Shown here: positions 28,543 through 52,802 of the stretch, in pieces | Position numbering within the stretch: the first letter of the stretch is position 1 | How the letters are laid out: each line of letters starts with the position of its first letter | DNA from: Zancudomyces culisetae HAW-14-8 | Lineage: Eukaryota; Fungi; Kickxellomycota | NCBI GenBank assembly: GCA_052426225.1 | Contig: JBNJNM010000012.1 | Location: forward strand, 1,798,001-1,862,000 | DNA length: 64,000 bases | Reading direction: 5' to 3' | Program-made: the position numbers and the translations under genes | Notes under the pieces: generated by a model | What the model saw: the letters and a program-made list of their open reading frames with translations, nothing else | Databases searched by the model: none | Told to the model about the DNA's origin: nothing

Positions 28543-29118
28543 ATGCGAAGAATACTCGTCAGTATAGTTGGTATATCCTTCTTTGCAAACGGATATTGTG
28601 AGGATAGCAGCGATTCCATTGCGAAATTGGCTGAATTGAAAAGAATATCTCCAGACTACCACATCTACAACCGAGAGATACTAGGTACGAAGGCAATTGA
28701 TGCTTTAAATTCGTATGCCAGCGATAAAAATATTGTGGGATTTAGAGCCGTTTCGTTGTGTGGCGATCCATCAGGGAGCCTACATTTATACGATACATTT
28801 ATTTTAAAGGAGACGTGTAACTCGATGCTCGGTGTAAGAACAAGAAGTGTGTCTTGGAAACCAGGAGAACCATTTGTCGATAATAGTCAACACAACTATA
28901 TCTGCCGATACCCAGCTATGGAAGCAGGAGCAAACTTGCAATACCTTGAGGTTGAGGACGAGATATCCAAGTATGTAACCGTCACGCTTTGCATTAAGAA
29001 TCAAATGTATATTGTAGAGTACGACTATGCTGGTATAGACAACGTGAGCAATGTTCACAACGAGGTTGATCAAACATGTGCGTCCGAGCTTTTTGCACCT
29101 CTTTACAATAGGTTTTAG
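28543..29118 (+). CDS. Uncharacterised secreted four-cysteine protein, family member 1 (191 aa)
   Basis: First ATG at 28543 gives signal-peptide-like MRRILVSIVGISFFANGYC. Colinear similarity to the ORFs at 50672-51292 and 52173-52802. Confidence 0.85.
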   Translation: MRRILVSIVGISFFANGYCEDSSDSIAKLAELKRISPDYHIYNREILGTKAIDALNSYASDKNIVGFRAVSLCGDPSGSLHLYDTFILKETCNSMLGVRTRSVSWKPGEPFVDNSQHNYICRYPAMEAGANLQYLEVEDEISKYVTVTLCIKNQMYIVEYDYAGIDNVSNVHNEVDQTCASELFAPLYNRF

Positions 29119-29397
29119 ATGAAATTTACTAGTTTATTGTCTCGTTTTACGAGGGATTTATGTTGGTAGTGGGCTTGGCGTTGATAGGCATGGCGTATGA
29201 TAGATCATATTTTACGCCAAGAATATTTTGCTATTTTACTATGCTATGAAATACATATAAAAGATTCAAAAGCCGTCAGAGGAGGAGGAGATTTGGTTTT
29301 ATCATTGTGATTCCACTTCAAAACAGATAGTGTAAAGTCTTGTCGAATCTAAAGCTTGACAATCAATAAAAGGTTGAGGGAAATGAAAGGGGAGAGG

Positions 29398-29398
<1 letters not shown>

Positions 29399-29452
<54 letters not shown>
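29399..29452. repeat. (TG)27 microsatellite
   Basis: Perfect dinucleotide run. Confidence 0.98.
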
Positions 29453-29454
<2 letters not shown>

Positions 29455-30782
29455 AATTTGTTGATTCTACATGATTTGTGGTCATCTAATTTAATCATGC
29501 CTATATAAAAGCAACCTGTTTGTGCACATAGACAGGAGAAAAAAAACACAAAAAAAAATTTTTTTTAATATATCTTTCAGGACATTCCAAGTAATAGGTA
29601 CAAAACTGGAAAACAAAGGCTATGAGCAAGTACAGTGGAGGATTTTGGTTGTTGGTATTGATGAGAATAAAAAATATTGTAATCATTAAATGGTGGTGGG
29701 AGGAGGAGCGGGGGGGGGAGATAGTGTAAGGCCAGTACTGACTTGACTATAGGAAGGGAAATATCATATGATTTTTTTAGGGGGTGGTGTGAGGTCAGGA
29801 GCTAATGGCAAGCAGATATACATTTAAGAGGGTTGATAGAAGCCATTGCTGATTCTTTGTTCACTTACAAAACAAAAAAGTGATATCAATTTTTTTTATC
29901 TGTATCAAGATAATGTGTGGGAATGTTGTTTTCTTTTATTGAAGAAAATTTAGATACAAGTAATTGGGAGGGGAGCAAGAAGGGAGCAAGGAGGAAGGAG
30001 GAAAGGAGATGAAAGAAGATGAGAAGAGGAGGAGGAGGGTTGGCTACTCATCCTCTATAGGAAAAAAAGAATCAAAAAGAAAAAAAAGCATATATGGTAG
30101 AAGCAAGGAAGGACTTATATTTGGGCCAACAAAAGTTTTAGAGTAAAAAATTTTTTTGGAACGAAAAAAAAAGAAAAAAATCAAATAAAACGGGAATGGC
30201 AGTGAATTAATAATTTCGGTTCAAGGGGACAGGCAAAATGAACGAATAAGGATTCAAGTAAATAAGATAAAAAAATAAATGCAACTGAATTATAAAAAAA
30301 TTTTTGGATTATAAAAAGAATGAACAGTGTAAGATGAAATAACATTGTTTTGCTGTGTAAAATAAACTTGAAAGTTGAGAAAAACACTTGACAAAAAAAA
30401 AAAGAGAAAAAAATAGAAACCGACAAGAAATAAATTAGCGAAATTAGTACAACTGGTTTAGTCAAGGCGATTGAAAATCTATATATCATAAAACGAGAGA
30501 AATATAATAAGCGAAATTGCACACGGTAAGGATAAAGTAATAGTGAGATTTTTTAAAAAAAGAGAGAAGCTTGGATGATTGTCGAGTTAATGCATTATTC
30601 AAAATTGAATTCTGAAAATTAAATAACCAATTGTCACCTTTTTTATAAATAAAAAAAGTGGGTGAAGGGGGGGGAGGGAGGAAGGACTGATAGAAATTAA
30701 AAAAAAATTAAAAAAATCGAAAAGAAGAATCAGTAACAACGAGTATAGCAAAAATATTATAAAAATAGAAAGTGAATTGAAG

Positions 30783-33700
30783 ATGAGTACGGAACGTGGA
30801 TTGGATTCCAGAGCTATTTTGCATGGATTGGTGTATCTCCATAAAAAAAATCAACTAAACGTAAAATGTTTAGAAGAAGACGCGCCACAAACAACCAAAG
30901 GCGGCAATGGCAGTGGCGATAGCGGAGGAGCAGGTGGTGGTGGTAATGGTAATGGTAGCGGCGTTAGTGGTAATGGTAATGGTGGTGCTGGGAAAGGGAA
31001 TAAAAAGGGAAAGAGTACTGCGGAAAATGAGGGTACATTGGAAAAAGAAGGACCTGGAGGAAGCGGGCAGCACAGCATAGCAACGCTAAAGATCGAAAGT
31101 AGTGCGGTGATGAAGGAATTGGCACGATTTAGAGCATGTGATGAGGAGGGAGTAACATGTTTTTACTGTCGTGAATGGGCACAATGGGTGTACCGAAAGC
31201 AGGTTTCAGGAGGGCACGATGTTGGAAAACGCAAAAAAAAGGGAGGAAAGACGGAAAAGGACGATAGTGAAGAGAGAGAGGGGAAACGAGCAATGCGAGA
31301 AAAGTACCGTACAGTGGGTGAGCTATGCAAAAAGCTACGGGGTAGGATCGAAGAGGAAAAAAAAAAGATAGAGAGTCTTCGAGAAAGCAGTGAAGGCAAC
31401 AATGGAAACGGAGGGAGCAGTGTCGGTAGTGGGACGGGAGGGAATTTGATTGAGGCGATGATAGACGATGTTAGCAAGTGGACAGAAGGATACAGTTTTC
31501 CACTTTCAGAGGTATACGAAGATTTGAAGTTTGATTTTCCGACAGAGGCATTCCCATTTGATGAGCAACAAGATCCGTTGGATCCATCACTACTGCTGCC
31601 AGCCCTACAGGTGACAAAGACATTTATAACACTTCCATCGGCAAGGTTTTCGTTGTTGGGAAACATCACGAGCGAGCTGATAGCAACACACACATACCCG
31701 ACGTGTCAGCACAACAAGGCAGACCATCCGACACCATCGGAGCTGGAAACGCAACGAGTGATTTTCAACTCACAGTTGACGCGACAACGGAAAGAGTACA
31801 TGGGTAGCTATACACACGAGATGGAGCCGGTATGGCAAATTACGCAGCTGCTTTTAAAGAGTGTGCAGCGAATAGAGGCTATGCGGGTACGGTTGTTTAC
31901 GAAGGGATGTCATGCAAACCGGCAGCAGTTTATTCAAAGTATTAGGGAAAAGACGCTTCCGTTTGCAGAGTTTTGGGGGCAAGCGACCCGCAACATCGCC
32001 AAGGGAAACAAGGCAACACCAGCGATTGTGAGTGAAATGGATCAGATTTTTGCGATACACTTGGAAAACGTGTTGGATGTAAGCTTATCGTGGTCCAAGA
32101 CATTCCTAGAGTCGTATTATGGTGTGGCTAAGGAATTTGTGCGCGAGTTGGAAACGATTTTGGGAGAGTGTATTACAATGTGCGACCGGCGCGCACAGGG
32201 TTTGAAATATCCACCGCCGCTAACACTAATGCCACAGTACAATGCTGCGCGGGATTCTATTTCCCGTCTACAGCCACAGCTTGCGGAGCGGATTGAGCAG
32301 ATCCAGACGATGCTAAAACAGCGCAACGAGCAGGTGTTGAATGAGGTAATGGATGTTAAAAAGCTTTGGGAACTTCCGAGCGATTTACCACCAGGCAAAG
32401 CGATTTCACTGAGGTTTGAACAAGCAAATTCCAAAGAAATGCGCAAACGGATGAAGAAAATTGAATACCTACAACATGTTTCTGTAATTTCGTGGTCTAT
32501 GCATGAGATGGAGCAGTTGTTGACGGCTGCTGACGTTGCAACAGTGGCAGTTGATTGTCTTGAGCTGCTGATTACGGAGGCGGAAATACTGGAGCGAGCG
32601 GTTGGGCAGGTTTTTGCTAGAAAGTTAGAGTCGACAACGGACGAATTGCGCGAACAGCGGCAGGATATTATTGACGATTTCACGGAGGGATTGCTGACAG
32701 GACGTGAAGAATTGGCAGGAATTATCGGAAAACTTATGCTTAAAGAGGCGTGGCGAATTCTAGAGACGAACATATCGCTGCAGAAGCAAATGGATCTTTT
32801 GGGAAGTGGAAGTGGGTTTGGTAACGACGGAGGAAGCAGCAATAGTCTTTTGGCTGCTAAGAAAGGTAAAAATCATTCTTCTAAACAGCAAAACAGTTCA
32901 GCTAGCAGTGCAAAGAAAAACAAAAAGAAGAAACGCAAAAATAAAAACAAGAATAAAGCTAAACCTGCTGTTGAACCTTCTCACAACCACGCAGCAGAAC
33001 GCGATCAAGCTGAGCGGAAAAATGAAGTTGTTGAAGAAGATGATGAGGATGATGAGGAACTAGAAGAGCTAGAAGAGCTAGGTGAGGTCGAAGAATATGA
33101 GGAAGAGGAAGAGGAGGAAGGACTTGGAGAAGATGACGATGATATTGTTGGAGCTGAGGGTGGTCAAGACTACTATGAGGAACATGAATATGATGAAAAA
33201 TATGAATATGAGAATCATAATGATAATGTAAATTTAAGTGCAGACAAAGACAAAGACAAAGACAAAAATTTAGATGTAAAAACTCCAGTATTGCAGACTT
33301 CTGAGCATGTTTTGGTAGACACAACTGACCAAAAAAATAAAGTTAATGATAATCTAGACAAGCACGAAAATGTTGATGGTTCTGATTCTTTTATTTCTCG
33401 GAAATCTATTGAACCTCTTGAATCTCTTAAACCCAATACTGATACCAATACCAATACCGATACCGATATAAATACCAATACCGATACCGATACCAACACC
33501 AATATCGACACCAATGTCAATATCGATACCAACGTCAATCTCAATCTTGCTCAACCCACTCCACCCACAAATGTTGAAAACATCAACAGTCTGAACCTTA
33601 TTTCCACCCCTGAGCCTATCAAAAGAGACTTCGAAATTGAAAATATGAGCAATCCGAGCACCATTACCAACCTCGAATGTACTATTATTGAAAAAGTAGA

Positions 33701-34107
33701 CTCTGAAATCGAATCATTCAACAAACTGCTTGCTAGCTACGGCGATATGTTTACCTCTGATGATTTGGTTTCAAACAAAAGCATAGAATTAGATGTAAAT
33801 GGTCTAAAAGGTATGTCACATGATCAACTAGCCATTTTTACCCACAAACTATTGTTGCAAAAGGCCCAATATGCTCAGATGTTGGATAGGCTATACAAAA
33901 GTGTTCATTTAGTTAACAAGTCATACATCGATATTCAAACTCAGCTAAAAAACCTGGCTTTACAGACCGAAAAGCAACATACAGATACTCTTTTAATGGC
34001 TGAAGCCCTGATTAGCTGTGAGGCTGAGCTAGAGTTTCTAAGGAATAGTAGATCCAGTGGTAAAAAGGGTGTGAACAATCTAGATAACAGTGGAAACATG
34101 TCTACCC

Positions 34108-34141
<34 letters not shown>

Positions 34142-34679
34142 GCAACATAGACAGCTGTTTTCGTTTTCAAATACTGAGGAATCTTTGCATACAGATCCTG
34201 TCAATAACTTTCCCAAAAACGCGGGTAGTATTAACGGCTCCCAATTTACTTTTCGACTAGATTCCAAAGTTCAAAACTCGTTTTTGCGACCAAATGCCGA
34301 AAAATTAGAATATTTGGCATCACCCACAAAGCCCATAAATCCTCCCGGTATTGGTGCTGGTATTGGTGTTAGTGATGGTGGATTGTTTGCTGATATTGTA
34401 GGCAACACCAATACTCTTAATCATCTTAATCCAAGTTCTATAAACAACAACGAAAGCCCTGTCAACTTGAATGGCCTTTATAGACAGCCACTACAGCAAC
34501 ACCACCTCCAACAACAACAACAACAACAACATCAGCAACAACTTTTACACCCTTTTCTACCATTTAACTATGTACATCAACAACATCAACAACATCAACA
34601 ACAACAGCCTCATAATATTATACCCCATAATATTTTGAATCTAAATCAAAACGCCTTTGCTTCAAACCTCAACAAATAA
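30783..34679 (+). CDS. Large uncharacterised helical/coiled-coil protein (~1298 aa) with CxxC motif, basic NLS-like patch, acidic tract and polyQ
   Basis: Uninterrupted 3.9 kb ORF with first ATG at 30783. CFYC motif, long amphipathic helical core, KKNKKKKRKNK, E/D tract, DTNTN repeats, polyQ. Confidence 0.85.
33435..33545 (+). repeat. Degenerate hexamer coding repeat (AATACC/GATACC; TN/TD dipeptides)
   Basis: Encodes NTDTNTNTDTDINTNTDTDTNTNIDTNVNIDTNVN. Confidence 0.85.
34107..34145 (+). repeat. (CAA)n polyglutamine tract
   Basis: 13 Gln codons, almost all CAA; further CAA tracts at ~34509-34607. Confidence 0.95.
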
Positions 34680-35117
34680 ATCCCCTTTCTAGATTGCTTT
34701 TTTTTTTGTCTTTAAATGAATGTTTCTTTGTGAGGTTTGTTTCTTTTCCTGTTTCTTTTTCATTTCTTGGTGTGATGTTCTATTTTCCATTCCCCTCCCC
34801 TCCCCTCTCCTTCTCTCCACCTCATCCATCTCCACCCCTTCTTTTTACATAAAGGATTCATACTTTTTGATGACCGTCTAGTAAATAAAATATGTTCATA
34901 TTATTTGTATTATTATTTGGATTTGTATTTGTATTTACACCAAACAAATATTTTGATGAGCAGCTAAGAATGGGGGTCTATAGAACAAATTGATGCATAT
35001 TATTGCATCTCGTAATTATTACTAATTGCAAATAAATATTAATAATATAAATATTCCAGCAATAATAGACTTTGTAAAACTAAAAACAAATAAAAACAAA
35101 TAATATACATTTAAATA

Positions 35118-36357
35118 ATGAACGAGTATAGCGAACAACGATTACGAGACTTGGGTACGGGTTTTATCGTCTAAAAGAATTATTAGACTTTGTCTTTATG
35201 CGTCAGAAAATGTCCTACTCTATATGCAAAAAAAAAAAGTACAAAAGATTTGTAAATTCTAAATCTGACTAATACAACATGGTTTGTAAAATAGCATGCA
35301 AGATAGAAACGGAGTTTGTAGAGGGAGTATTTAACTCCAATAATGGCAAGTTTTCTATTATTGACTCTGGTTAACTTTTATTGTAAATATTTTTGGCTTT
35401 TCAATGTAAGCTATTCTATGCAATCTGAGTCTGAAAATTGTAATGATTTGAATGTAGAATTAAATGTTCTTGAGGAAATATCTGTAAAACTAGACAATAA
35501 CGAAAAGGCTGTAGAACGGGTACGTGCACTGTCACTACTGGGATATATGCACTTGGCTTAAGATTCTCAAAATATTTTATTTACTCCTTTACTTCACTCC
35601 ACATCCTTTCCACTTCCCCTTTCTAACTTGACCCCGACTTTTTCGATATATTTAGAGTATTTCTGCGTTGGAAAGTATCAAACCACACTTAAGCCAAACC
35701 AATGTAAACGAAAAAATCAAGCAAATCGAAGCTATTTACAAGGATATCGAGCGTTTTGAGCAAATCCTAAATATTGAACACGAAAACGTCAACAAGCTTG
35801 ACAAATGTCTTGACGAAGTGGTGGAGAAATTGATAATGCCCTTGCAGAGCGAGTTTAGTGATATTAGGGACTTGGATAGATTGCTGAATGAGAACACAAC
35901 CAACAGCATGAATACCACTACTGGTGAGGAGAATGCTGGTGGAAGCGCAGGTGCGGGTGCGAGTATGGGTGGTGGTAATGGTAATGGTAATGGTAGCGGT
36001 GTTAGTATCAGTGTCAGCACTAGCAATTACTTGAACAGATTTTCGTTGCTTGGTGCCAAGGCCACCGACTTGTTTATTGAAAAGGTAAAATTACTAGTGC
36101 GGTTTACATGATTACATGGGGAGCAAGTATTTTGAATAGTAATAGTAATGATAATAATAATAATAATACCAGTAATAATAACCACTGCTATATTGTTTGT
36201 TTATCCGCTCTAGATAATGAATCCTAGGAGTCAAAGACATCCAGCAGATCAACAGATAGGTGTTTCTGAGTGTGACGGAAATACCTACTCGACTGCCAAA
36301 AAAAAGCCATGGATCTCTCCCTCTATAGAGATTCCTGAGCTTAAGAAAATTCCTTGA
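35118..36357 (+). CDS. BLOC-1 subunit 4 (Cappuccino/Cnl1)-like coiled-coil protein, 5 exons
   Basis: Exons ~35118-35154, 35295-35345, 35458-35519, 35656-36084, 36213-36357 join in phase. IEAIYKDIERFEQIL...NVNKLDKCLDEV recalls BLOC1S4; Pro-containing C-terminal tail WISPSIEIP. Confidence 0.5.
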
Positions 36358-36641
36358 AGTTGCTGGTTTGTTGGTTTGTTGGTTTGTTTACTTTTTATTT
36401 TTCTTTTTTTTTATAGCTCTATTTATGAACCTTTCAAATCGCAAACATTTTCCTATAATTTCAATTTCTCGTGGATTTTATAGTATATCAACCAAAATTT
36501 GTAATTTTATTAACCCAGTTTCCAATTTTTCAGTATCCCAATTTGTAATATTGTTTTATTTAGTTTTATATTATTCACATTTTATAAACACCAAAATTAA
36601 AATTAAAAAAAAGAAAGAATCCTTTCCAAACATAAAACTAA

Positions 36642-37716
36642 ATGAGTAAAATATCAGGTCCTGTGAACACAGTGATGTCTGGAACGACTTTGACAACTGT
36701 TGCAGCTACCCCAAGTGGGAGTGGTGCGGGTACACAGCCTCTGGCTACCTACGAATGCAGTATACACGGGATTATCCACTCGGATCAGGTAAATATAATC
36801 CGGAGGCGGATTGAAAGTATCTGCTACAGCAGTACTATGGTTGGCACTCAAAAACGGGAGGAGCCGAGAGAACAATGTCAGAAATTCAAAATCTACGAAC
36901 CTAAAGTTCAGACACCAATTGGGCCGAAAAGAAAGAACGATATTTTATTGTTCACCAAAAAAGAGTACGACGAAAACAATAAAGTAAAAATGTAAGTGGA
37001 GTAAATCTTGTGTGATTCTTTATCTGTGCCGTCTCTCACAACTATTTATTAAACATTGGATTTTTTTTCTCCATTTCATTTTGTGAATAGGACGATCTTT
37101 GAATATGGACAACCAGATACTAAAGCTAGCAGAAGCGCAACGATTAGACCCATAACAAGCAGCGGGATTTACAACTGTGAACCCGAAAAGCTGTTGGAAA
37201 ATCTGGGATATAGGTAATTCTGGCATTTCAGTACATACTATGTCTTTTATCGATGTAATTCTGTAATTGTATTGCCAGTTGTTATGAAATTATTTCTCGA
37301 TTACTATTGAATCAACCAAGTATAATACCATCATTCATTCATCCAAAATAAATCAAAAACCAACTAGGGAATATGCAAGCTTTACAAGAAAAGGGTACTG
37401 GTATGACTATTACGGAAGACAAAAAGGAAAAATAGGATTATACAAAGTTGAAAGGGGGACTCAAGGTAAACAAAAAGAACAAGGACAAGAACAGGCGGGA
37501 AACAACGATGTTAAGGAATCTGAACAGAGTCAAGAATGGATTGTTGAAGTCACAAGCTTTGCCAAAGGAATCGACAATGTACAATATAGCGTCGAAGTAT
37601 TAGAACAGATTAAAAAAGAATTGAACATGCTACTGTTAATACACAGAGACAAGATCAAGCTTGATTTGGTTGTGGTTGATCATATTTACACTCAAAGCAA
37701 AATTAGCTATCGATAA
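36642..37716 (+). CDS. MED18: Mediator subunit 18 (Srb5), 3 exons
   Basis: YECSIHGII...RRIESIC, WTIFEYGQPD...ATIRPI, LLENLGYR, EY..FYKKGYWY, WIVEV, DLVVVDH. Introns ~36992-37090 and ~37214-37367. Confidence 0.85.
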
Positions 37717-37725
37717 ATACTAGTA

Positions 37726-40700
37726 TCAAGCAACCATCATTTCTATCTGTGCGAGTCTTTTTTTATTGCTGCTATTTTTGCTGTTTGCATCAATGACATG
37801 ACACAGGTCAACTCTTACTCCTGCAGATAATAGTAGGTCTATCCATCCCTAACAGCAAATGTTGTTATTTATAAAATCCGTTACTTTGTTACTTGTAAAT
37901 AAATATATATTTATACATTTATGCATTAAATCATTAATAAGTGTTAGCTTATCCAGTATATTTACAGAAATAATATACAAACTTCTCAATTTATTACCTT
38001 TTGTGTTTCAGATAAAGTATCACCAGGTCCTTTGACTATAGATTAATAATATGCTCAGTTAGCTAAATAACGTTCCATTTTATCAACCCAACCATGCTTA
38101 CAATTCATATTAGTGAAAAAGTAAATGTGAAATACAAATGATTAATTTTAATCTTATTTTAATAAACTCGAACCTTCCGAAAAGACCAATACGTTAGAAT
38201 CAATATTCCAGGCGCAAATGTCGGGCATCCCACTTGAATGGCGTTTGTAGTCTGATGCTAAATAAATACACACTTCGGCCAATGCACTAGGTCCTAGCAG
38301 CGTGACTAGTTCACAAAGGACATCGGCAGAATAATAATTCCAGTTTGAAACCCCAATACATATCGTATTCCTTCTCGATTCTCGCAGATACACCGCTCTT
38401 ATAGCACTATGCACCCGCGAGCTGTTTCCATCTGATGACATAATATCTTTGATTCGCCTGTCAATCAAATCCTTTCTTAATGCGTAGAACGAATCGCAAT
38501 GATACATATCCAGCGGGTGTGTCTGGAACTCTGAATCAAACATTCCCTCAACAGGTGAAAAAATGATATCCCAAAATAATATTACAAAAAGTGTATTCAG
38601 TATCGAGTTCTCCGAATGAAATCCGGATATATTTTCTGCCTCGTGGTAATAGTCCAGTGCTATCTCCTCAACAGTCTTTAAGGTGCTGTCATCGGCCAGG
38701 TTTTTCCATACAGCCCTTTTGCTATAAGGATTTCCGACTTTGTATGCGCATACGCTGACTTCATTGGGTGTCTTTTGAGCGGGAAAGTTAATAATGAGCT
38801 GAAGTTCTTCGGGGGTATTTAGCTTTTTATCGATATTTGCTAGTCGTTTCCCAAGCTCTTTCAAGTCAAATACACTTGTGTTGCTGTTTAAAATCGCCCT
38901 GATACATGTGTCTCTACACTCCAGCAATACCTCTATACTATTTGCTTCGCTATCAAACAGGTAGTTGTACTGTATCAATGCGAGTCGTTTATACCATTTA
39001 CCTTCCTTCACCCTCCTATACCACTTTTGTTCGAGCAGTTTTTTGAGTATTTCGCTTTCGCCTTTAAAGTCCTTTAGTGCTGCCATTGACTTCATGATAT
39101 AATTCTCAACAATTCGGGTCAACACCCACCCAGCTGTCAATCTTCTTTTCCAGTTTCCCACCTTTGTTTTTTTATCATCGTTTCCTTTCTCTTTCTTCTC
39201 CATATTTTTCCATTTCTCCATTTTTTCAGTTACCATCAAATCCCACACCTTCATAAGTGGCTTTGTAATTTCATATATATACCTCCATCTACTAGTTGGA
39301 TCTTCATCTTTGATAAGAACTTTACTACCACCATCACTGATGTTTGACAATTCTCCATTATTTGCTACGTTTTCCAAGTATGCTTCCACATCCATCATGT
39401 ATTTAAAGTCTAGTACTGCCTGTCTACTTTTAAACATGGTTGAACTCCTTGTAACTTTGTAATTAGGGTAATTCATTTTCCCCATTTTCTTAAGAACCAT
39501 GGCTGTAACAATCTCAATGCTACTTCCATAACCCACCGTGTTGTTTTCGCCTTTGTTGACACTACCCAGTGAGCTATCATTTGAGAATCCTTGTCGAGGG
39601 CTGTATATCCGCCCAAATATCAAATTCACTCGCTCCATCAATGCCCGGCTATTCGGATTTACCTTTATCGCTTTTCCTACCATCGATTGCATCCTATTCC
39701 TAATCTTCACTTCAACCGACTCTCTCCTAGAACTACTACTTGTATTCCTAAAAAATCCACTAATATTTTGCTGTTTTTTCGCAACTTTTTTCATCTCCTC
39801 CATTATTTCCTGTCGCTTCATTTTTCTTTCCCCAGAAACGCCAACTTCCTTGCAAATATCCTTTAGCTTTTCCACACTAATTAGCTCGCTCAACTCATCA
39901 ATATCATCTCCGCCACAGGAAATAAGGGGTAATACATTTCTGCAGTCAAAAAGCTGCTTTCTTCCCCGCACCTCTTCTCCACTGCAATATCCGCAACTAT
40001 CACTTGCACCATCACATGTATCTCCGCACTCGTCAAGCTCATCATAATATACATCTCTTAACTCATCAACCGCTCTCTCGACATCTCTAACTTCTCTATA
40101 GTTTATACTTTTTACGCTGATCCACTTGTTTCTCCGCGTATTTAGCCTTACAAACAAACATCGGGCCTCCATGCTTAAAGTAAAATATTTCTTAAACATT
40201 TTGATCTCGTTTTTACAAAACAGATAACTTTCCTCTTTCAACACCGTTCGTAATATGGTCTCAAACACATCGACCATATACCCTCCCCCATCACCTTTTT
40301 TGCCATCACTCCATTGGCTCGCTTCTGTAGTATTTAAATCTGGTTGACTAAAGTCTATCGTATTCGCGGTGGCCCATTTCTCAAAATCAAAACATCGATC
40401 TTTTACGATCGTGGGACTGTTCTCGCGTTCTAGTTCTCTATCCTTTATTTGCTCTAGAATCTCCTCGGAGATATCATGTGTATTTGAATCTAGTGTGTTT
40501 TGCTCGGTCTTATCCTCGAGTTTAAGTTCGAGAATGCTTTTTTGTGCTATTATTCCTACTTTGGTTTCGGAACTTTCCTCTTGTATAATTACGCTTTTAA
40601 TATCTTCTTTTTCGGTAAAGCTGGTTGATTTTTTTATACTTAAGCTTAGCACATGGCTCTGTTGGGTTTTTTTTATAATTCTATATACAATTGTAAGTAC

Positions 40701-40995: not shown

Positions 40996-41811
40996 TTTTT
41001 GCGCCCCTATATTACGGATATGGTGCTATAGATACGTGAAGATAGGTCTAATGAAATACAATATATCGCGCTAGAGAACCTCTTAAACATAAGCTACAAA
41101 CACATAGTTTTCCAAATAGATGCTGAGATACGTGTTTTCGTGTGTAAGTTTGTTTATTTTACTAAAGAAAACACCACTTTCTCAGCCTACGGGATTAGGC
41201 TAAACAAACGGCATTAAATCAATCGAAAAAAATTGAGTAGTGCTTTCTGGGAGGGCATTCAAAAAAAAATTTTGAAGTAGAAATAATCATTTCTGATTTG
41301 ATCAAACCCATTCTTTGTCTCCAATGAATGGACCTGGTTAGTGAAACTTACCATTGGTGAGTTTTTTACTTTTTTTACGTTATTTACGTTTTTTCTTTTC
41401 CATTCATTTTATCTCGGTGTATTTATCTGTGATTCAAAATAAGGCAAGCAGTGCAGAAAAAAATCGCAAATACGCAGCAAAAATGGTTTGATTTTAATTT
41501 TCAATAAAAGGAGGGAAAGACTCTTGTTGGTTTGAGATATATAAAAAGATCAAGCAGGTCAATAACACTTTTCTAATTTTGCAGATATTTGTTTCTTTTT
41601 GCTTTAAATATACAACTAGTAGGTGATAAGTTTTAAAACCAGGAAAAACCCCAAATTGAGCTTATTAACCATACAAATCTAAAAGAATACAACTACTTTT
41701 CTGAAGGAACAGTAAAGTTTGTAACCAATATATACATTGAAATACTCATTTGTGGTTTACATCACAAGGGTATTTATAACCAAAAGATATAAAATACACG
41801 CAAAATAATTA

Positions 41812-43378
41812 ATGCAGCAACACACTGCGGCTAGCAGTAAAAAACTGAAAAAGAAATACGAAACAGATATGCCGATAATCAGGGACGAACTTCCTGAAGA
41901 TTTCAGTGTGAGTCAATACGCAACTAAATACCAGGGGAAATATCTGATAAGTCGCCTGACGCTACTGGCTGAATTGTGTCCAGGATTTGCGTTGGATTGC
42001 TACAGAGCGGCTCTTGAAGAACTTGTTAAAACGACATATGATGTTAATGCGTATAAAAAGATATACACAAAATATAAAAATGAGGTCGAGAAGAGACATA
42101 TGTTGACAGATTATTTGTTGTATGATGAAGAGTGGGTAGAAAAGGTCACTCAGCAAGTTCGAGTAGAGTTTAACCAGTTGGAGCACGAGTTGATTGACTC
42201 TAAGGCGAGTCTGATGAAAAATAGTATTAGGGTAAATATTTACGTTTATGTTATATTTTAACAGTATAATCTATTTTCTCAGTCGTATATATGTGTGTGT
42301 ATTGTGGAATATACAGACTGGATGAAATTCTATAGTTGACACAAATCCGGATCGGAGAACTGAGATTCAAGTACGGAGATTTGACAGGAGCAAAAACATG
42401 TTTTGGTAGATTGAAAGAGGTTAGCACCAGTAGTGAACAGTTGCTAGAAATGTATGTTCTGATGATAAAGGTACGTTGACTTTTCTTGATTATGTGCTCA
42501 AATATATACTTAGCAGAAAAATGAACAAAAAATCAACACCTTTTGCCAAAGCGCTCAACGAGCTGTTTATGAAAAATTAGACATGCATTGGAATGCAGGA
42601 CTATTCGATGCTGGGAGCCTATCTTGAAAAAGTAAAAGCGTTACGAGTGGTCAAAGATGAGTATTGGAACATAATATGTTTTGCCACTGCGATAATGCAT
42701 CTCGAAAACAGAGAATTTCGCGCGGCTTGCGATGCATTTCTTAATATGAAATATAATGACGAAGATGACTTTGAAGGAATTACAAACAATGTGGACATAG
42801 GAATTTATGGTGGATTGTGTGGGTTGGCGACATTGAGTCGGGAGGAGATCAAAGAAATGCTTATAGACAGTAAAAACTATTGTAGTTACAGAGAATTGGA
42901 TTCAGAAATAAACTCGTGTATATTGGATTTCTACGACGGAAAGTATAAAACAATGAGTGAAAAACTAAGTAAAATTATCAGCAAACAGAGAGTAGATATG
43001 ATTACACATAATGCATTGGAAGAGTTGTATAGGAATATAAGGTATAAGATTATAAGAAGCTATATAGCACCAAAGTCAAAGGTTGATTTGAATAAGATGG
43101 TAAATGCACTAGTATATTACAAAGAGGGTGTGGAGGGATTAATACAAGAGCTGGTAGCATTTAAGCTGCAGTATGATCAAGTCGATGAACTACTGGAGAA
43201 GTATAGGATTAATGAGTATGATGGGTATTTGGAACAAGATTTGGAGGTGAATTATGCGCTGGAAAAGGCCAGAGCTTCTGTAATTAGCGCTGAAATGGAG
43301 GTGAATGTCAGAAGTGAGATTGAAATGTTTAAGATAAATTTATTAAACAATGGTATGCTAGCTGGCAATCTGAAATGA
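41812..43378 (+). CDS. CSN1: COP9 signalosome subunit 1 (PCI domain), at least 3 exons; 5' end may extend with small exons in 41325-41711
   Basis: YATKYQG...ISRL, DEEWVE, LEHEL..SKASLMKNSIR / L..IRIGE...KYGDLTGA..CF.R, DIGIYGGLCGLATLSREEIK, LYRNIRYKII.SYI.P. Exons 41812-42231, ~42336-42470, 42581-43378. Confidence 0.85.
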
Positions 43379-43421
43379 ACATACGACAAAAAAACAGGTG
43401 CTCTATATATAATTACAAGGT

Positions 43422-45068
43422 TTATTTGTTTGATTGGTAAAAACCAAGTCTTTTTGTTAGCACTGTATTCACATTTTCCAACCGTTTGATTTTCTGTCGT
43501 AAATAAACAACATCTTGGTCAACGAAAACGTCTGGCTGCCGGTTGAGCGAAAAGTTTTCTTCGGAAACGGCCCTTAGGCCCAATAGGGACTCTTTATTGT
43601 TGATGGTAGTAAGATTGGCTGAAGAAGACAAAAACTCGGAAAATGAAGGGGAGATTGAGTTAGAAAAGCTATCTGGTCCGTTGTTTCTTGCTGTAAGCTT
43701 GGCGCTTGTGTGTCCATAAGATTTATAAACACCAGCAATGTCACCCCTATCGTTCCTCCTGATATCGTCTGTTGTGATGCTGCGAGGACTAAAATCGCCA
43801 GGGCTATGCTGGGTACTGTATTGAGAATTGTATTGAGCGCCTAGCCGATGGGGACGGAAGGATATATTGTCAGTATCATAGCTGTATCGTTGGCTGAACT
43901 CGGCTGAGTCATGAGGATTGCTGGGTTTCGGAAAGTTATCCATAGAATACTTGTGAAGTGTGGTAAATGGAAACTCGTTTTGTTTTCCTAGTTCAAGTCT
44001 GTTAGTGCTTTTCATGTATTTAGATTCGTTCAATTTTGAATCTTCATTCACGTTGTTGTGCGTATATTTTACTGAAGAATGATCTTTTGAATATCTCGGG
44101 CTTGAATTTCCAAGAGCCGCAATAGATGGCCTCCTTTCTACGTCCATATAGCTTTGATACCCGCGACTATTGAAGCCAGTAGAATCAATGGCAAGATTTT
44201 TCTCGGTCCCGAAGCTACGGTTGATATCTTTGTTATCCCCTTCAAAACTTCCTTCAACTCTGAACATGCTGTTGCCGAATAATAGAGATTTGTTTTCGGC
44301 ATTGATACTGTTTTTTTTTATGCTGTTGAGCTCGGCTTTGATGTGTCTATTCAGTGCATCTAATCTGGCAAATCCTCTTCCACAATAGTTGCAAATATGG
44401 GGCTTTTCTCCTGTATGTAATTTTACATGTCTCTTTAAATCGTGGTGCCTCCTAAATGTCATTTTACATACTTCGCATTTAAATGGCCGTTTGTTTGAAT
44501 GCGTTAACAGATGAGACTTTAAATTATGCAATCTCGAGAAGCTTATTTTGCAATGCTCACACTTGTATGTTTTTTTATTTAGCAAAATACCTTGTTGGTG
44601 AATTTTCTCAAGTTGGTGTTCTGATGACTGATTACTAGTTAACAGCAGTTCTCCGAAAGAACTGTTCGATGCATTGTACGATGTTGTATCTTCTTCTTCA
44701 TTACTACTATTACTACCTACGCTGCTATTTCTTCTAACGTTTATATCTATCCTGTCGCTAATCACACTGTACATAGGTAGCCTTTCCTTTATTGTAAAAT
44801 CTCTTTGGGTGTTGGCTGGCACCATGGTTTTTCTATACTCACTCTCACTTTCCTTTGTTGTACTCATCATATGTGTGTTCATATCAATTGCATGAGTACC
44901 ACCGATCCTTTCTCTACCATAGCCTTCAACTATATATGCATTACCAGAGATAATATCTTTTGGTGTCTTTGTTACCCCATCGCTATAACATGTATCGCTC
45001 CTCTCTGCTACACATGCTTGTATGAATTCTGATATTGGGGGAAGTTTGAGTTGACCGACTTCTTTCAT
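43422..45068 (-). CDS. Three-finger C2H2 zinc-finger transcription factor (Crz1/Crz2-like fingers)
   Basis: CEHC..FSRLHNLKSHLLTH, CEVC..FRRHHDLKRHVKLH-TGEKP, CNYC..FARLDALNRH; N-terminal LKLPPISEF motif; C-terminal coiled coil. Confidence 0.9.
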   Translation of the reverse strand: MKEVGQLKLPPISEFIQACVAERSDTCYSDGVTKTPKDIISGNAYIVEGYGRERIGGTHAIDMNTHMMSTTKESESEYRKTMVPANTQRDFTIKERLPMYSVISDRIDINVRRNSSVGSNSSNEEEDTTSYNASNSSFGELLLTSNQSSEHQLEKIHQQGILLNKKTYKCEHCKISFSRLHNLKSHLLTHSNKRPFKCEVCKMTFRRHHDLKRHVKLHTGEKPHICNYCGRGFARLDALNRHIKAELNSIKKNSINAENKSLLFGNSMFRVEGSFEGDNKDINRSFGTEKNLAIDSTGFNSRGYQSYMDVERRPSIAALGNSSPRYSKDHSSVKYTHNNVNEDSKLNESKYMKSTNRLELGKQNEFPFTTLHKYSMDNFPKPSNPHDSAEFSQRYSYDTDNISFRPHRLGAQYNSQYSTQHSPGDFSPRSITTDDIRRNDRGDIAGVYKSYGHTSAKLTARNNGPDSFSNSISPSFSEFLSSSANLTTINNKESLLGLRAVSEENFSLNRQPDVFVDQDVVYLRQKIKRLENVNTVLTKRLGFYQSNK

Positions 45069-48000
45069 TTTATATTGGACTAGGGTTATATGTATTTATG
45101 TGATGATCACAAATATGTGTATATTAATCGAATTTGTTGTATACTTGTCTAAGTTTGGTATCAATGCAAATAATGTTCAGGATTTTATATCGTACTTCCA
45201 CTCTGTATATATTTTTTTCGCTTTGGTTTTTTAATATTATTTTATTGATATATTAATATGCTAGTAAGAATACTGGGTATTTTTTACTCGCTCCTCCTAA
45301 ATAAAACAACAGAGTATATAATTTAATATTGGTTTAAAAGTTTGGAAAACACAGTCCTTGCTTTGTTCAAGTGTTGGGTATTGAACAACTATGCTCCAAA
45401 ACCTTTTTTGGTTCAGTCAGCTATCCTTGTATTTATAGTGCTGATGGATTAGTAAAAAACTAAAATCAATGTAAAGTCAGAATATAAAACGTGTTTCGCT
45501 TTTTGGTTCAGGAATTCATCGTATTCGACGTTTCTTTATAAAGTGAAAAAATATTATTTTAAATGCTAGTGTCTAAGCCATTAAATATTTTTATACTGCT
45601 CCTTTAATTTTTTTTTCCTTTAGTCTGGATTACGTAAATCGTCCAATTATAGGTGGGTTGTGAAGTGAAATTAATCGCCATCGTCGCCATTCCCAAAAAA
45701 CAGCGGCCTTGACTAACACATAAAAAAATGGATAGCGATGTTATCATATATTTTGTAATACCTGCATGTATATGCTAACACATTATTAATTTATTATGAT
45801 TTAATTTTTTCGCCGAATTTGGAATTTTTACATGAGCCGAGCCATTCAGCCATAAATCGCCCCGTTTCACCAGAACTATCTATCTATTTCGTCCGCCTAT
45901 TTGTTTAGTTTACGTTTCAGAAATCCACACTTGAATATAAATACCAAATTTATGCAGATATAGTGTGTTATCAATGGCTTTGTCAGTTTATTGGTTGGTG
46001 CAGATTGCTCTAAAAATAAAAAAAACCGGCGTTAAAAATAAAAGATCTCAGTTTTTTTATTATCAACTTTTGTTGCAAATTTGGGATGTTCAGGTAGTTT
46101 TATGCTGATAAATAACACCTATGCTTGTTTTTCATTAGTGTATTCATTTCCTCAAAACAAGATTGTCATGAGTGAATAAGGGTAATGAGCACTTAATTAC
46201 ACAAATCTTTTTTTTTATGGCGTTTCCCAATAGGCAGGAAAGGAGCACTTAATCCTCTACCTAAAAACTTTTCACTGATCACAAAAGACCTTCAAAGCTC
46301 GTCCCCCATTTTACTCCTACTTTTCCTTCTCTCATTTCATCCAGCTCTCTGGGCCATACTACAGGTTTTTTATTGAACAGTTTTTTTTTGCCCAGCTTAA
46401 TAACTTGACTTAGTTTAGCTTGCTTGGGCCTATCTACCTCATTCTCAATTCACTGCGAAATAGATTAAAACCCTCTTTGTTTCAAACTGGACTTGAGAAT
46501 AAATTAAAAAGTTGCCTACTGATTACTAATCCTTCAACCACAAAAAATTTCGTTGTGGTTAATCTGCCTTCATTTATCCCGACTTGTATCGCATCATGTT
46601 ATCATGGGGTTCTAACTAGTTGCCAAAATAGATGCTAAATCTCAAAATCGACATTTTTGGATCTGTATACTAAATTACGTAATACGATACTAAAGCAAGG
46701 TTATTTTACCATAGCAAATTAATGACAAAGCTGGAACATTGCTTTATTTCCGCATTTACGTATTTACACATAAATACCAAAGTATAAAAACGGATATAAT
46801 CAAAAATCATCGAGAAAAATAAAAAAATACTTTTTAACCACATTTCTAAATTACGTCGATTTATTCGATGATCATTAATATGGAAAAAATTTTCTTGCTA
46901 AAACCAAATTGCAACAATCTCACTGAAATTTTGAATGCTCGCCTCCCCATCCCAGTCGAACTTTGCTCTCCCCCTCACGCTAGATTGGTTTATATTTTCA
47001 ATATAACATTTAAAGGTTTTTTTTTTCTTTTTTTTGGATTTTTTTTTTACTTTAACCTTTATTAGACTACTAATATTTCTTTTTCTGCGCAGCAACAACA
47101 ATTAAATTAAATTAAATAATCAAAGACGTATTTTTCTACACATGCTGTCCAGTTCTAAAAATACCATATGGTGTTGCAAGTTTAAATCAAAACTATATCC
47201 TCGCGAGTAAACGCATGCGCCATACCCCACACCTGCAGTTTATCCTAGTAGAATCTATAAGCTGTTAATATTTTTGTTACTTTTATATAGCTGTCATGTG
47301 TATCTTCGTTTATTGCTTACATAATTCTTTATTGGTCATTTCCCCTCCCAAAGTGTTATATTTTACATATTACCTAATATATATTGAAACTAGCAACAAA
47401 TAAAAAGTAATAATTATACCAATAACAACAATATAATAACTATGCATTTTTGCTTCCAACCTCCTATACTAGATTTTGGGCATTGAAACCCAGAAAGACG
47501 CTAAAACATATGGTTTCTACAGACCCAGGCATTTCATTTTGCCTACCCCTACCCCTTTCTTTTGGGTCTAAAATAGATCTTTAAAATTACCGAATAGCAT
47601 AAATACATCTATATTTGTAAACAAATATCCACGTGTAAAAAAAAAGAGTTTGCTTTATGTTACCACAAATAAGTACCAGCGGATATTATTTAGCATACTT
47701 TTTTGTAATCATCTGTTCTCCTCTAAAATATTTGTTGGAAATTTTTCGTATTTTCACCAACAAGCCCCCCGTCCTATCTATTCATCCACAAACAGCACAA
47801 TTGTTTAAATAAGTTAATACTGGCTACCACAAATCCATAAGTTTCAACTTTTGTACAATTACTATTTGTGGTTTTAGTTCCACAATTTACATAATTATAC
47901 CTGTAAATTCACATTTACCAACTGAAACATGGGTACGATAAGTACTCAAAAATGCGTAATGACACATCTTTCCATTACTTTGTCATCTTCGCTAAAAGTG

Positions 48001-50671
48001 ACGGTGTTGGTCAGTGTAACTCTCTTACTACCCTAGAATCAATTGCTGCGTTTTTTTTTTGCTTTCAACATGTATATCACCACTCACATGATTATCCAGA
48101 TATATACTCTAATAGCACAACATTTTAACTTATTTTCACAAAAAGCGGTATAGTAAGTTACTTAACCCTCATTGAACTGTGGCCAAACCAAAATAGTTAA
48201 CTATATGAGTATTTTTCTATCTGCTGTCAAGCACTTTGTTAAAAAACTTTTATTGGTAATGGATATTCATTTTTCAGTTATTAAAACTGATAATAAACCC
48301 TTTTCTTGATAACACGTCTACCTAAATAGAAAAAGGCTGTATTTTTTTGGAACTTCCTGGAATATCTTCACACACAAACACACAGAATAGCCAACACATG
48401 CCTAATCAGAAAAATATATTTGAATCAGCTCATATGGTTTCAACTATTATTATTTTATGATGAGCTTTTATCACTTTTTGAGCTTCCCTAACCCTTAGTT
48501 TTCACTAATACAACACCGTTTGCCACGACCTACTAAAACAGGTTAAATGACATATTTTAAACCACATATGCGTCATCAATATCGAGTAGAAATGACGATA
48601 GCGTTTCTCATAATTTTTGAATTATTATACACCCAGCAATATTTGGATAGCACATTTCAGCTTCGCTGAAACCTTTTGTCTAAAAATCAATTATTTCTTT
48701 TGATAAATAACGAAATCAAGCAAAATTTCAAAATTTTTTGGACCTGTCCACCTTTAAAACATTCTAAACATAACACATAACACACATCATTATTGCACAT
48801 CATTATCGCACATCACCCCATTTCGAGGCCTGCGTTTTTGTTCCGCTTCAACAGTCTTGGTTATAATTTATGTCCAAAACAGGCAAAGCCAGTAAATACT
48901 GAACACAGCTTTTTTCTCTGGGCACAAATAGACAATAGCAAAGTCCAAATATTTTCCAGCACAACTACTTGCTTACAGTAAGTGACATACCAAATTCTAG
49001 CATTACCAAGCTTTTTATTTTTAGAAATCGATGTACTTTTTTTAACGCTTTACCTCAATTCGGAGGTAAATGACAAAAAATACTAGAACTAGCATGGTAC
49101 TAATGTTATTTTTTTAATGTTATTATAATATTGTCCCCAAAATCATCACATTTTTCCGTATTCTAAATCATATAAACCCCATTCATTTTCCTTAATCTTG
49201 CTTATTCAAGCTTTATACGATTTAATATGTAAAATTTAGACAGTTTTAAATTAATTAATCCGCAAACTAGGATATACAGTAACATGTACAAGGCCCAGCA
49301 TATTCAAGACTTGTTATTTTTGATTTGCACCACAAAAATTCTGCATTACATAGGGAAAATAAAGCTTGGTAAAGCAACCCATGATGGAAATAGCATCCTT
49401 TCCAGTTTTCTCCCTCCCCTTTCAAACAATATCATTTTGGAGCCCCCTTTCAAGCAGTCTATGGTATTCATTTTTGGTACTCACTACTATCCTCATCACA
49501 ATTTTTGGATTTGTATAGCATTTATTTCCAGCTTTGACTTGGTCTTACTCTGAATATTCGTCGCTTTTTTTTTACATTTTAATAATAACCGAAAACTGTT
49601 TTACTGGATTTCCTAGATCAAAACTGGAATTAATAAGCCGCAATAGTTTTAATTTGGCAAAAAACTCTGTTAACTTTACTACCGACTTGGTTTCACATTC
49701 AATACAATTTACGTAATATGTATACTAAACTATCGAGAAAATCAATATTTCCTAATTGGGAAGATTAAAATTTTGTTATTTAATGACTAATGGGTAGCTA
49801 ATTAAAATAAAATATTGCATGTGAATAATAAACCTATTGCATTAACAGCAATGTCCAACATTATCAAACTTAGCCAATTATCATCACATGTGTTCTGGCA
49901 ATCATTCCAAGCTCTCCCTTCATATCTTGTCTAAACCACTTCTCCTCACTTGATAAGTTTGCTTATCGATTATCACTCATCATCTCAATACTTTTGTCCT
50001 TTAATAATTCAAACTGGATTGCATCACTTAACAAACATCATATACCTGTGCCAAAGTTCATAAGTTTGTATTTGCACTTTTCCATCCCTGCGGATATTCC
50101 AATAATCTTTTTTTTTTGAATTCGAGCATGAGTGGAATCACATGGAGATAAGCAATTATAGTGACTCCTTTGTTCCTTAACAATTTGTTAGTGTTATCAT
50201 TCGCATATGACAAAATCAACCTTAAATGTTACCACTACATACCATCGCCCTAGTGCGTTACTTTTTTTTTTATGTGCCCTTGGTGATGCACAAGCTTGGC
50301 TAAACTCATTCTCGTCTTTCTTCACTCTTCAAAAAAACAAAAAGGACATATGCGATCAACAAGACCGGAAATGGTATACAACACACTCATTACTTTTGGT
50401 AACCGGTGTATATTTTAAACAATGACAATACTCAGCCAAGTGTTCTTAGCATTCTAAAACGTTTTTTTTTTGCCATAGGCGCTTTTTTGTTGAGTACCGG
50501 TGTCCTTGGCCTACTCTCAATAAATTATTATACTTTTGAACTCTAGTGTTTACATTATGTTTAATGTATTTACTTGATTCTAAAATGACAGTGACCCCCT
50601 TGGTTATAACACTTTCAAAAAAAAAAGACTTTAAATGAGAATCAAGTAAAAGAATGCCGTTTGGATCAAAC

Positions 50672-51292
50672 TCATACGTTCCCTTCAATCGCGAATCCAG
50701 GGGGATACTTTGGCTTTGATATGCTATTGTGTATGAACACAAAAAACTCAAGTGCACACTCTCCTGTTTGAGAAGTCTCAAGTTCATCCAAACTGTTAGT
50801 ACTTTTAATTGTATAATATACTCCGTAGTCGTTGCCAGCTTTACAAACAGAAATCGTCAAGAACTGAGACTCGTCGTAGTAAATCGTAGAATACATTGCT
50901 TCTTTATCATGGTCTATTGCTGGGTATCCACAAACTTGACCAGCGCGGGTATTATCAATCAGAGGATTCCCATATTCCCACACTACACTATCTATTTTTA
51001 TCTCGTCATCTGTACTACAAACCTCTTTCAAAATACGTGTGTTGTAGGTATATTTACCCGCTTTATATTGCTCTTTGGGTGGTACTGCTCTCAAACCGAC
51101 TAAAGTTTTACTGTTTTCATAAAGCCCAAGAGCTTTAATAGCCCGCTTTGCAAGCGTTCCCCGATTGTATGTTGCATAGTCCTCCGAAAGCCTCGTTTTG
51201 TCTGCAAACTCTTCTATCGAGTCACTAAATGAGCTTACTACGGTTAAAAAACATAGCACAAGAACAAAAAAGCAGCTATTAGACCATTCCAT
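50672..51292 (-). CDS. Uncharacterised secreted four-cysteine protein, family member 2 (206 aa)
   Basis: ATG at 51292 gives signal-peptide-like MEWSNSCFFVLVLCFLTVVSS; paralog of members 1 and 3. Confidence 0.85.
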   Translation of the reverse strand: MEWSNSCFFVLVLCFLTVVSSFSDSIEEFADKTRLSEDYATYNRGTLAKRAIKALGLYENSKTLVGLRAVPPKEQYKAGKYTYNTRILKEVCSTDDEIKIDSVVWEYGNPLIDNTRAGQVCGYPAIDHDKEAMYSTIYYDESQFLTISVCKAGNDYGVYYTIKSTNSLDELETSQTGECALEFFVFIHNSISKPKYPPGFAIEGNV

Positions 51293-52172
51293 CTTTTCAA
51301 TCTTGTAAGCGGGTGATACTAATTGCAAATAAATATCTCAAAGTGGCTTATTGATGTATATATCCTTTTTAAACTAAAGGGTGTGAGTGGTAAGTATCGT
51401 TTCAATAGCATATTAAGTATGGTCATCTTTATTTTATATTAAAAAGAGATGTGTTTATTATACTTTACTCTGTTAAATATTTATACAAAAGATAAAACTG
51501 TTATCAACTCATGCAGGAACGTGCGTATTCTTATATTCACAAGTTTTAATTAATAGATTGGCAGTGATGGATTGCGTTTATTTACAAACTCGATATAATA
51601 TAACTAGGTTAATGATTAAACAATAAAACCAGACTTTAATGATGAGTATTTACACATCCAATAGCAGTTTTAATTGCAGAAAATAAAATTAAGCAAGAAA
51701 AGACTTGTAGTCTATTGCCTGTACTCTCGTGTATAGCCCTGTATAGCTAAGGGTAAGTAAACAGTTAAACATGAACAATCTTCGTAAGTGGAGAGTTTTA
51801 AATGATAATTATTATTGTTTTTTAATTAATATATTGGAAGCATTTTTGTAGTCGGAAATAATGGGGTTTACGGCAGAATGAATGTCAAAAAAGAAACTAA
51901 CGAGTCCTTAACTCGCAACTTTACCAACTCTTTGTTGTTTTTTTGACTTTGTCATAGGCATTAAAGTATAGAAATTCAAAAGTTATTCTGTATAGTTGGT
52001 TAACTGGTTTATTTTAATGCAAATATTATAGCCTGACACAGCCTACTAATTTTAATAAATGCGGTGGTAAATCTTCCGTACTAATTCTTAACTTGTTTTT
52101 TTCTTTCTTTTTAATAGACGCTACAGGTGGAATCGATATATTCATATATGAAATCCCAAGTAATGCGTTTAG

Positions 52173-52802
52173 TTATTTATTGATAAAAAAATCAGGAACA
52201 TATGCTGGCCGCTTAAAATTTTTCCAAATGGAAACGAATAACTCGTACGCACAATGGTTTGTTTGGTCTAACCCAAGCTGGTTCTTGTTATCAGTGTTTA
52301 CATATCCATATTTGAAAGTATATTTGTCATCGTTTACACAAAGCGAAACTAATAGAAGCAGATTCATATCACGTTGAGCAAGAGGTGATATCTCACCCGT
52401 ATCATAATCTATCAGTGGATATCCACATATTTGGCTATTCTTTGAATTATCACTTAATAGAGACCCTGGCTCCCACACCACAGTGTTTATTTTTGTCTTA
52501 TTCTCCGTGCTACATATCTCTTTTAAAAGATATGTATTGTAAGCACGTGTATCAGTGGCATTCTGACCCGCAAAAGGAATGGACTGGAATCCGACGAGGC
52601 CAGTACCGAGTCGATAGGAATTAAGTGCCTTAATTGCTTGCAGTCCAAGTGCTTCCAGGCTGTATATTGAATAATTTGGTGTAAGCTTTGTTGCTAGTGC
52701 AAGCATTTTGATTGTATCTGAAGTAATACATGGAACAACGTTGATATAGAACAACAGGTATGTAAAAGTTCTGATGGTTTTTTTAAACTTCATTTTCTTC
52801 AT
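52173..52802 (-). CDS. Uncharacterised secreted four-cysteine protein, family member 3 (209 aa)
   Basis: Basic N-terminus followed by hydrophobic TFTYLLFYINVVPC; paralog of members 1 and 2. Confidence 0.85.
   Translation of the reverse strand: MKKMKFKKTIRTFTYLLFYINVVPCITSDTIKMLALATKLTPNYSIYSLEALGLQAIKALNSYRLGTGLVGFQSIPFAGQNATDTRAYNTYLLKEICSTENKTKINTVVWEPGSLLSDNSKNSQICGYPLIDYDTGEISPLAQRDMNLLLLVSLCVNDDKYTFKYGYVNTDNKNQLGLDQTNHCAYELFVSIWKNFKRPAYVPDFFINK

Follow-up and report, generated by a model that had tools for sequence, protein, structure and literature searches.

Three Single-Exon Genes in the Window

The analyzed window is a 64,000-nt stretch of the genome of the fungus Zancudomyces culisetae HAW-14-8 (contig JBNJNM010000012.1, positions 1,798,001 to 1,862,000), designated C12:1798001-1862000 in the searched assembly of 27.1 Mb and 25 contigs. 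It contains three single-exon genes encoding related proteins, here termed genes 1, 2 and 3, of which the last two form a tandem pair (Table 1). The three genes were found to be part of a much larger gene family, whose products appear to be small exported proteins with a conserved core and variable loops and for which an extracellular binding role is proposed.

An earlier note, made from the sequence of this DNA alone, had described three intronless open reading frames (ORFs) of 191–209 amino acids (aa) that align colinearly and share four cysteines. Both observations were borne out. Each ORF runs uninterrupted from ATG to stop, and the alignment of the three proteins contains 36 invariant columns, among which are the four cysteines and all the motifs listed in that note: S-D-x-I after the leader, Y..Y, AI.AL..Y, VG, Y.T..LKE.C, V.W..G....DN, C.YP, C, Y...Y, and CA.E.F. 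The gene 1 protein has one additional, non-conserved cysteine in its mature part. In the BLASTP comparison, one pair of the trio was aligned without gaps at 29% identity (expect value, E, 4e-35), and the products of genes 2 and 3 showed 37% identity (E 2e-43). Because of these E values, the similarity is considered real and the three proteins are judged to be clearly homologous, far beyond chance. No further copy of the gene, intact or decayed, was found in the window.

As for the upstream regions, the sequence TATA[AT]A[AT] showed the strongest enrichment among the 7-mers preceding the family genes (33 non-redundant genes), with a peak at −100 to −150 nt. Elements of this kind precede all three genes of the window.

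Table 1. Family genes, their upstream elements, and broken family copies. Positions without a contig prefix are those of the window.
Feature	Position	Strand	Remarks
Gene 1, subfamily A, single exon	28543..29118	+	191 aa, ATG to TAG
Gene 1, mature domain (predicted)	28600-29115	+	leader approximately residues 1-19; from ORF and alignment
Gene 2, subfamily A, single exon	50672..51292	-	206 aa, ATG to TGA; downstream in the tandem pair
Gene 3, subfamily A, single exon	52173..52802	-	209 aa, ATG to TAA; upstream in the tandem pair
TATA-like elements of gene 1	28417..28459	+	126, 124 and 90 nt upstream of the ATG
TATA-like elements of gene 2	51432..51485	-	146 and 193 nt upstream of the ATG, in the 880-bp tandem spacer
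TATA-like elements of gene 3	52861..52948	-	65, 67 and 146 nt upstream of the ATG
Broken family copy	C6:202090-202542
Broken family copy	C9:710742-711328
Broken family copy	C21:810271-810641

Family Size and Phylogeny

The earlier note had assumed a family of three, and this number proved to be far too low. A profile built from the three proteins detected 18 genomic sites, and a profile of more distant members detected 38. After merging, the family comprised 36 intact ORFs and three broken copies on 11 contigs. It falls into two subfamilies: subfamily A with four conserved cysteines (14 genes, including the window trio) and subfamily B with six (22 genes). Thus, the description of these proteins as cysteine-stabilized and duplicated agrees with the genome-wide data. 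Profile–profile comparison of the two subfamilies gave a probability of 99.95% (E 1.3e-37) over 183 columns. The 36 open frames, of approximately 190–240 codons in DNA with 35% G+C, have identities of 14–37%, and the precursors are mostly 186–214 aa long.

In the maximum-likelihood tree, subfamilies A and B each formed a branch with support of 100/100. The window trio formed a clade (98/92), within which the proteins of the tandem pair were sisters (95/86). Since the terminal branches of the trio have lengths of 0.7–1.07 changes per site, the duplications that gave rise to it are, judging from the tree, old, and the strong divergence of the three proteins is explained by the age of these paralogs.

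Close copies were also seen in the family. The 3.5-kb stretches C6:1656685-1660239 and C10:1347038-1350592 carry flanking ORFs that are 100% identical and a family gene with one aa difference; they represent either a very recent segmental duplication or redundancy of the assembly. One subfamily-B gene is present at C13:1645067-1645714, at C21:1923946-1924593 and, as a broken copy, at C9:710742-711328, with flanking ORFs 92–99% identical. The C13 and C21 copies are intact and 99% identical to each other, and the C9 copy is frameshifted, so this set is a recent dispersed duplication in which one copy is already decaying. In addition, a divergently oriented pair of subfamily-A genes 1.6 kb apart is located at C12:2340052-2342824; both are ordinary members of the subfamily and are not sisters in the tree.

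Range in Public Databases

Searches of the Pfam database with the trio and with the 36 members of the family alignment (alignment A4, consisting of 32 genome copies and 4 GenBank variants) gave scattered chance hits only, and the profile search against PDB sequences returned nothing below E 0.5. When 1.84 billion representative proteins were searched exhaustively in HMMER with a profile of 15 members, 23 proteins were retrieved. Ten of them were looked up individually and belong to Z. culisetae; the other 13 are near-identical to copies in the genome under study. A second search, with a subfamily-B profile, gave three matches, all from Z. culisetae. The public matches carry names of the type "hypothetical protein AX774_g..." and derive from assembly GCA_001969505.1. 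Judging from these searches, the family is so far confined to Z. culisetae among the proteins searched. The results agree with the proposal of a lineage-specific family with no known domain, and the profile searches of the genome and of the protein collections, which the earlier note had recommended, led to 36 intact copies and to no characterized housekeeping family. No publications describing the family were found.

GenBank contains annotations of gene 1 and of 12 more members of the family, and the tandem pair is present in none of the collections searched. The exact gene 2 protein was found in no public collection searched; the gene 3 protein is not on record and had no match among 5.8 billion clustered proteins. 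Either some short genes with a single exon escape the ab initio annotation, or this stretch is absent from the old assembly.

Selection on the Family Genes

Synonymous sites are saturated between the subfamily-A paralogs. The ratio of nonsynonymous to synonymous substitution rates (dN/dS) was taken from strain comparisons and from young paralog pairs. GenBank contig LSSK01001348.1 aligns to positions 25267-33431 of the window at 98.6% identity, and gene 1 is annotated there as a single-exon hypothetical protein with 1 aa difference. The 1.4% difference over these 8.2 kb consists of 61 substitutions plus insertions and deletions, most of the latter being intergenic. The two Z. culisetae assemblies either represent different isolates or differ through errors in the older 26x assembly. 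Substitution density between them was 5.2/kb in gene 1 versus 23–25/kb in the flanking intergenic DNA.

Eight subfamily-A genes could be compared between the two strains (4,725 bp). They contained 14 synonymous and 10 nonsynonymous differences (dN/dS 0.19), and their dN of 0.0027 equals that of the neighboring housekeeping gene MYG1 (dN 0.0025, dN/dS 0.07). Among young paralog pairs whose members have leaders, dN/dS was 0.24–0.7 in five of the six independent comparisons; the sixth pair (C6/C10) has zero synonymous differences and hence no ratio. According to these substitution patterns, the family consists of maintained genes under purifying selection. The earlier note had regarded the family as rapidly diversifying; the ratios obtained between strains and in most young pairs, together with the age of the other paralogs, do not support this view.

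Leader Sequences and Predicted Export

The same note had called the proteins secreted-looking, and a hydrophobic leader was indeed found in 33 of the 36 intact copies. In the trio, a basic start, which is strongly basic in the gene 3 protein, precedes a hydrophobic stretch; the maximum Kyte–Doolittle mean over 9 residues is 2.63 for gene 1, 3.41 for gene 2 and 1.91 for gene 3. In subfamily A, the leader ends just ahead of the conserved D-E-I start of a helix, and small residues precede the mature start. The mature proteins have masses of 19–21 kDa and are mostly acidic, most with an isoelectric point (pI) of 4.5–6. Neither a C-terminal hydrophobic tail nor a motif for retention in the endoplasmic reticulum was found in the family alignment. 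The family therefore combines small size, several conserved cysteines and the lack of a transmembrane segment or anchor, as is characteristic of small secreted cysteine-stabilized proteins. Judging from these sequence features, the family proteins are probably exported.

The three copies in which the leader is missing belong to subfamily B (C8:1254685-1255203, C8:1358733-1359251 and C9:728917-729594), and both C8 copies also lack the extra N-terminal cysteine. One of the leaderless copies is annotated in GenBank as a 167-aa protein. Pairwise dN/dS between the C8 and C9 copies is approximately 0.9, as would be expected if the loss of export had removed the constraint, and the three copies are probably turning into pseudogenes.

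Predicted Structure and Sequence Conservation

Structures were modeled in the AlphaFold2 program for the full-length gene 3 protein (15 paralogs; predicted local distance difference test score, pLDDT, 82.3; predicted template modeling score, pTM, 0.77) and for the mature gene 1 protein (36 sequences; pLDDT 84.7, pTM 0.82). The order of elements is identical in both models: three N-terminal helices, approximately seven strands, and a short helix before the last strand.

According to the analysis in the Foldseek program, neither model has a match in the PDB at E 0.001 or better, template modeling (TM) scores being approximately 0.1–0.2, and the one model compared with BFVD had no match there at E 0.001 or better. 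In the ESM Atlas, the best feature score was 0.82, which is at noise level, and the structural comparison gave TM ≤0.35. VIA-align against 48,161 PDB representatives gave best Z scores of 2.8 and 3.1 (2.8 in a second look), on a scale where, according to the tool's own notes, unmatched models typically still reach Z 7–8. Thus, the modeling and fold comparison that had been recommended yielded confident models that matched no known structure. The predicted fold, which is without a detectable relative in the PDB, BFVD and the ESM Atlas, is possibly new; these were whole-model searches, so the sheet part may still contain a known sub-fold.

The cysteines are the only residues found to be invariant throughout the family. 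Three further elements, namely the K-E ahead of the first cysteine, the W, and the Y-P following the second one, are common, each being replaced in some members. Since nothing except the cysteines is invariant, the conservation pattern does not look like a catalytic site or an enzyme signature. Column entropy is 1.8–2.0 bits in strands 1, 2, 5 and 7 and 3.0–3.4 bits in the loops, and all long insertions are located in loops. When projected on the models, this pattern is that of a fixed, putatively disulfide-braced core carrying variable loops.

Comparison with Known Protein Families

The analyzed proteins belong with the lineage-specific small secreted protein families of host-associated fungi. 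Like the MAX effectors of Magnaporthe and the FOLD (SIX1/Avr3) effectors of Fusarium, they have a signal peptide-like leader, a length below 250 aa, a few conserved cysteines of the kind that form disulfides in those proteins, and no Pfam domain; a conserved core, very low identity between paralogs and expansion in one lineage are also common to these groups. In contrast to both, Z. culisetae is a commensal in an insect, and its genes lie amid housekeeping genes and evolve under purifying selection. Neither effector fold was recognized: Avr3 (7t69) was the top Foldseek row, but with E 0.083 and TM 0.10, and AVR-PikF (7b1i) reached a Z score of only 2.0–2.3 over approximately 61 residues.

Family-2 cystatins resemble the family in being secreted and in having two disulfides, a helix on an antiparallel sheet, and conserved V-G (within a strand) and W residues; however, the domain studied here is approximately 50 residues longer, and the order of helix and strands differs. 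The cystatin domain (PF00031) had no Pfam match at E up to 5 in the 36 members, and no cystatin appeared in five PDB fold searches, three of them with VIA-align. Cache/PAS-like domains, in which N-terminal helices are likewise followed by an antiparallel sheet, recurred among the weak structural rows. These are bacterial receptor modules that show no sequence signal with the family, and their scores (Z 2.0–2.5, root mean square deviation 4.3–5.9 over approximately 80–95 residues) are within noise.

Possible Function of the Proteins

The explanation that we regard as on balance probable is that these are functional genes of a species-restricted family encoding exported extracellular binding modules, in which a conserved core carries variable loops for putative ligands. 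The product of each gene would consist of a leader that is cleaved off and a single compact domain of approximately 170 residues, in which three N-terminal helices would lie against a mainly antiparallel sheet of approximately seven strands; the number of bracing disulfides would be two in subfamily A and, probably, three in B. The four loops between the core strands, hypervariable and rich in insertions and deletions, would form the variable part, and the ligands recognized may differ between paralogs; they could be located in the lumen of the gut or be exposed by the host cuticle, by other microbes living there or by the fungus itself (wall, spore or holdfast). It is from the combination of a conserved core with four hypervariable loops that we infer binding modules; secretion and the disulfide bonds and, most of all, the role in binding are deduced rather than observed.

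Several points weigh against this reading. The leader calls are based on N-terminal hydropathy (Kyte–Doolittle) and alignment, and by hydropathy the leader of gene 3 is the weakest of the trio. As for expression, the GenBank gene models of the species are ab initio predictions. Both structural models were built on paralogs alone, and their topology could be wrong despite the high confidence. No ligand, partner or conserved neighbor gene was found for the family: no partner gene has been kept beside the old paralogs, and common flanks are seen in the recent segmental duplicates only. The strain comparison and the young paralog pairs gave no sign of positive selection, which weakens in particular the idea of effectors in an arms race. 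Finally, the fungal part of the protein collections appears to be restricted to annotated proteins, and short unannotated homologues in other Harpellales would lie outside their scope.

One alternative is that the proteins are structural material, i.e., building blocks of the wall, of the trichospore and its appendage or of the holdfast glue, rather than ligand-specific binders. Z. culisetae glues itself to the hindgut cuticle, and an abundant family of secreted-looking proteins would suit such a role. To our knowledge, the molecules of this attachment have not been described, and the literature found on the fungus names none. However, each predicted protein is a single compact globular domain in which no repeats, low-complexity regions, glycosylphosphatidylinositol (GPI)-type tails or wall-linking motifs are present, and a set of 36 paralogs that have diverged deeply and vary in their loops is more in line with recognition than with bulk material. 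Structural material is therefore considered unlikely.

Strict host-directed effectors, which would interfere with the immunity or the gut cells of the mosquito and be engaged in an evolutionary arms race, appear similarly improbable. Small, secreted-looking, cysteine-stabilized orphan proteins, expanded in a fungus with a host-associated lifestyle, are what this explanation would predict; purifying selection and the age of the paralogs are not. The genes are located in chromosome interiors among housekeeping genes and not in fast-evolving compartments, and the fungus itself stays outside the host tissue, on the cuticle lining of the hindgut.

It is quite improbable that the family consists of antimicrobial or killer-toxin-like proteins directed against gut microbes or other fungi. 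The habitat is crowded with bacteria, and fungal killer toxins are typically small, secreted, disulfide-stabilized alpha+beta proteins encoded by multigene families. On the other hand, no KP4, KP6 or other toxin fold was present among the rows with Z ≥2 or in the Foldseek lists, although such rows need not include every related family; most members are acidic, with the pI range given above, unlike most membrane-active antimicrobials; and no conserved immunity-like neighbor gene accompanies them. That the ORFs are non-functional, being chance frames or decaying remnants like the three broken and three leaderless copies, is highly improbable in view of 36 open frames with conserved cysteines and core in DNA of 35% G+C, the low dN/dS between strains, and the promoter-like TATA elements positioned upstream.

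As an extension of the binding-module explanation, it may tentatively be suggested that a new fold has been expanded to approximately 36 variants and serves as a recognition scaffold for life on the hindgut cuticle of the mosquito, its targets being surface molecules of the host, of microbes or of the fungus itself. If this is true, the variable-loop scaffold would be a commensal's counterpart to the effector families of pathogens, and if the models are right, a fold without a counterpart in the PDB, BFVD or the ESM Atlas would be added. Harpellales inhabit the guts of larvae of disease vectors, and very little has been learned so far about the molecules they use there. Because the family is large, maintained by selection, probably exported and absent from the other proteomes searched, its members are concrete candidates for proteins that the fungus may use for attaching, recognizing or competing in the gut of the mosquito.

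Genomic Environment of the Family

The published genome of Z. culisetae has a size of 28.7 Mb and 35.5% G+C with an ab initio annotation, and the host-associated lifestyle of the species is on record (PMC5026252). The possibility that the DNA came from a gut-dwelling early-diverging fungus, raised in the earlier note from the letters alone, proved right: Z. culisetae (Harpellales) lives in the hindgut of mosquito larvae.

That note had also placed the genes in gene-sparse DNA. This holds for one flank of the tandem pair, where a 5.6-kb stretch with 32% G+C (positions 45069-50671) separates the pair from a C2H2 zinc-finger gene; its ORFs do not exceed 89 aa, and neither tRNAs nor Rfam matches were found there. 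The description does not hold for the family, whose members have housekeeping neighbors and contig-internal positions. On its other side, the tandem pair is flanked by a DOA1-like gene, and gene 1 has the MYG1 gene on one side and a 1300-aa ORF on the other. No RNA genes were found in the whole window, and a scan of the surroundings of the tandem pair for repeats revealed none of note. Bacterial promoters and terminators were found in the window at shuffle level only, which is irrelevant here.

A location of the family at chromosome ends was considered and dropped: genome-wide, none of the 38 copies is closer than 100 kb to a contig end, and six of 38 are closer than 200 kb, the chance expectation being 18%. 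The idea of a secreted-gene island was likewise dropped, as the five-gene family cluster on C13 is interspersed with genes for an Rpb2-type RNA polymerase subunit and NF-YA. At least some of the contigs are telomere-capped chromosomes, since contig C6 (2,922,669 bp) carries a long TTAGGG array at C6:2921265-2921882, approximately 1 kb or less from its end.

Two simple repeats are located near gene 1. An 8-nt repeat with 5.4 copies lies upstream of the gene, at positions 27595-27637 of the window, and a perfect (TG)27 microsatellite is found 280 nt downstream of it, at positions 29399-29452.

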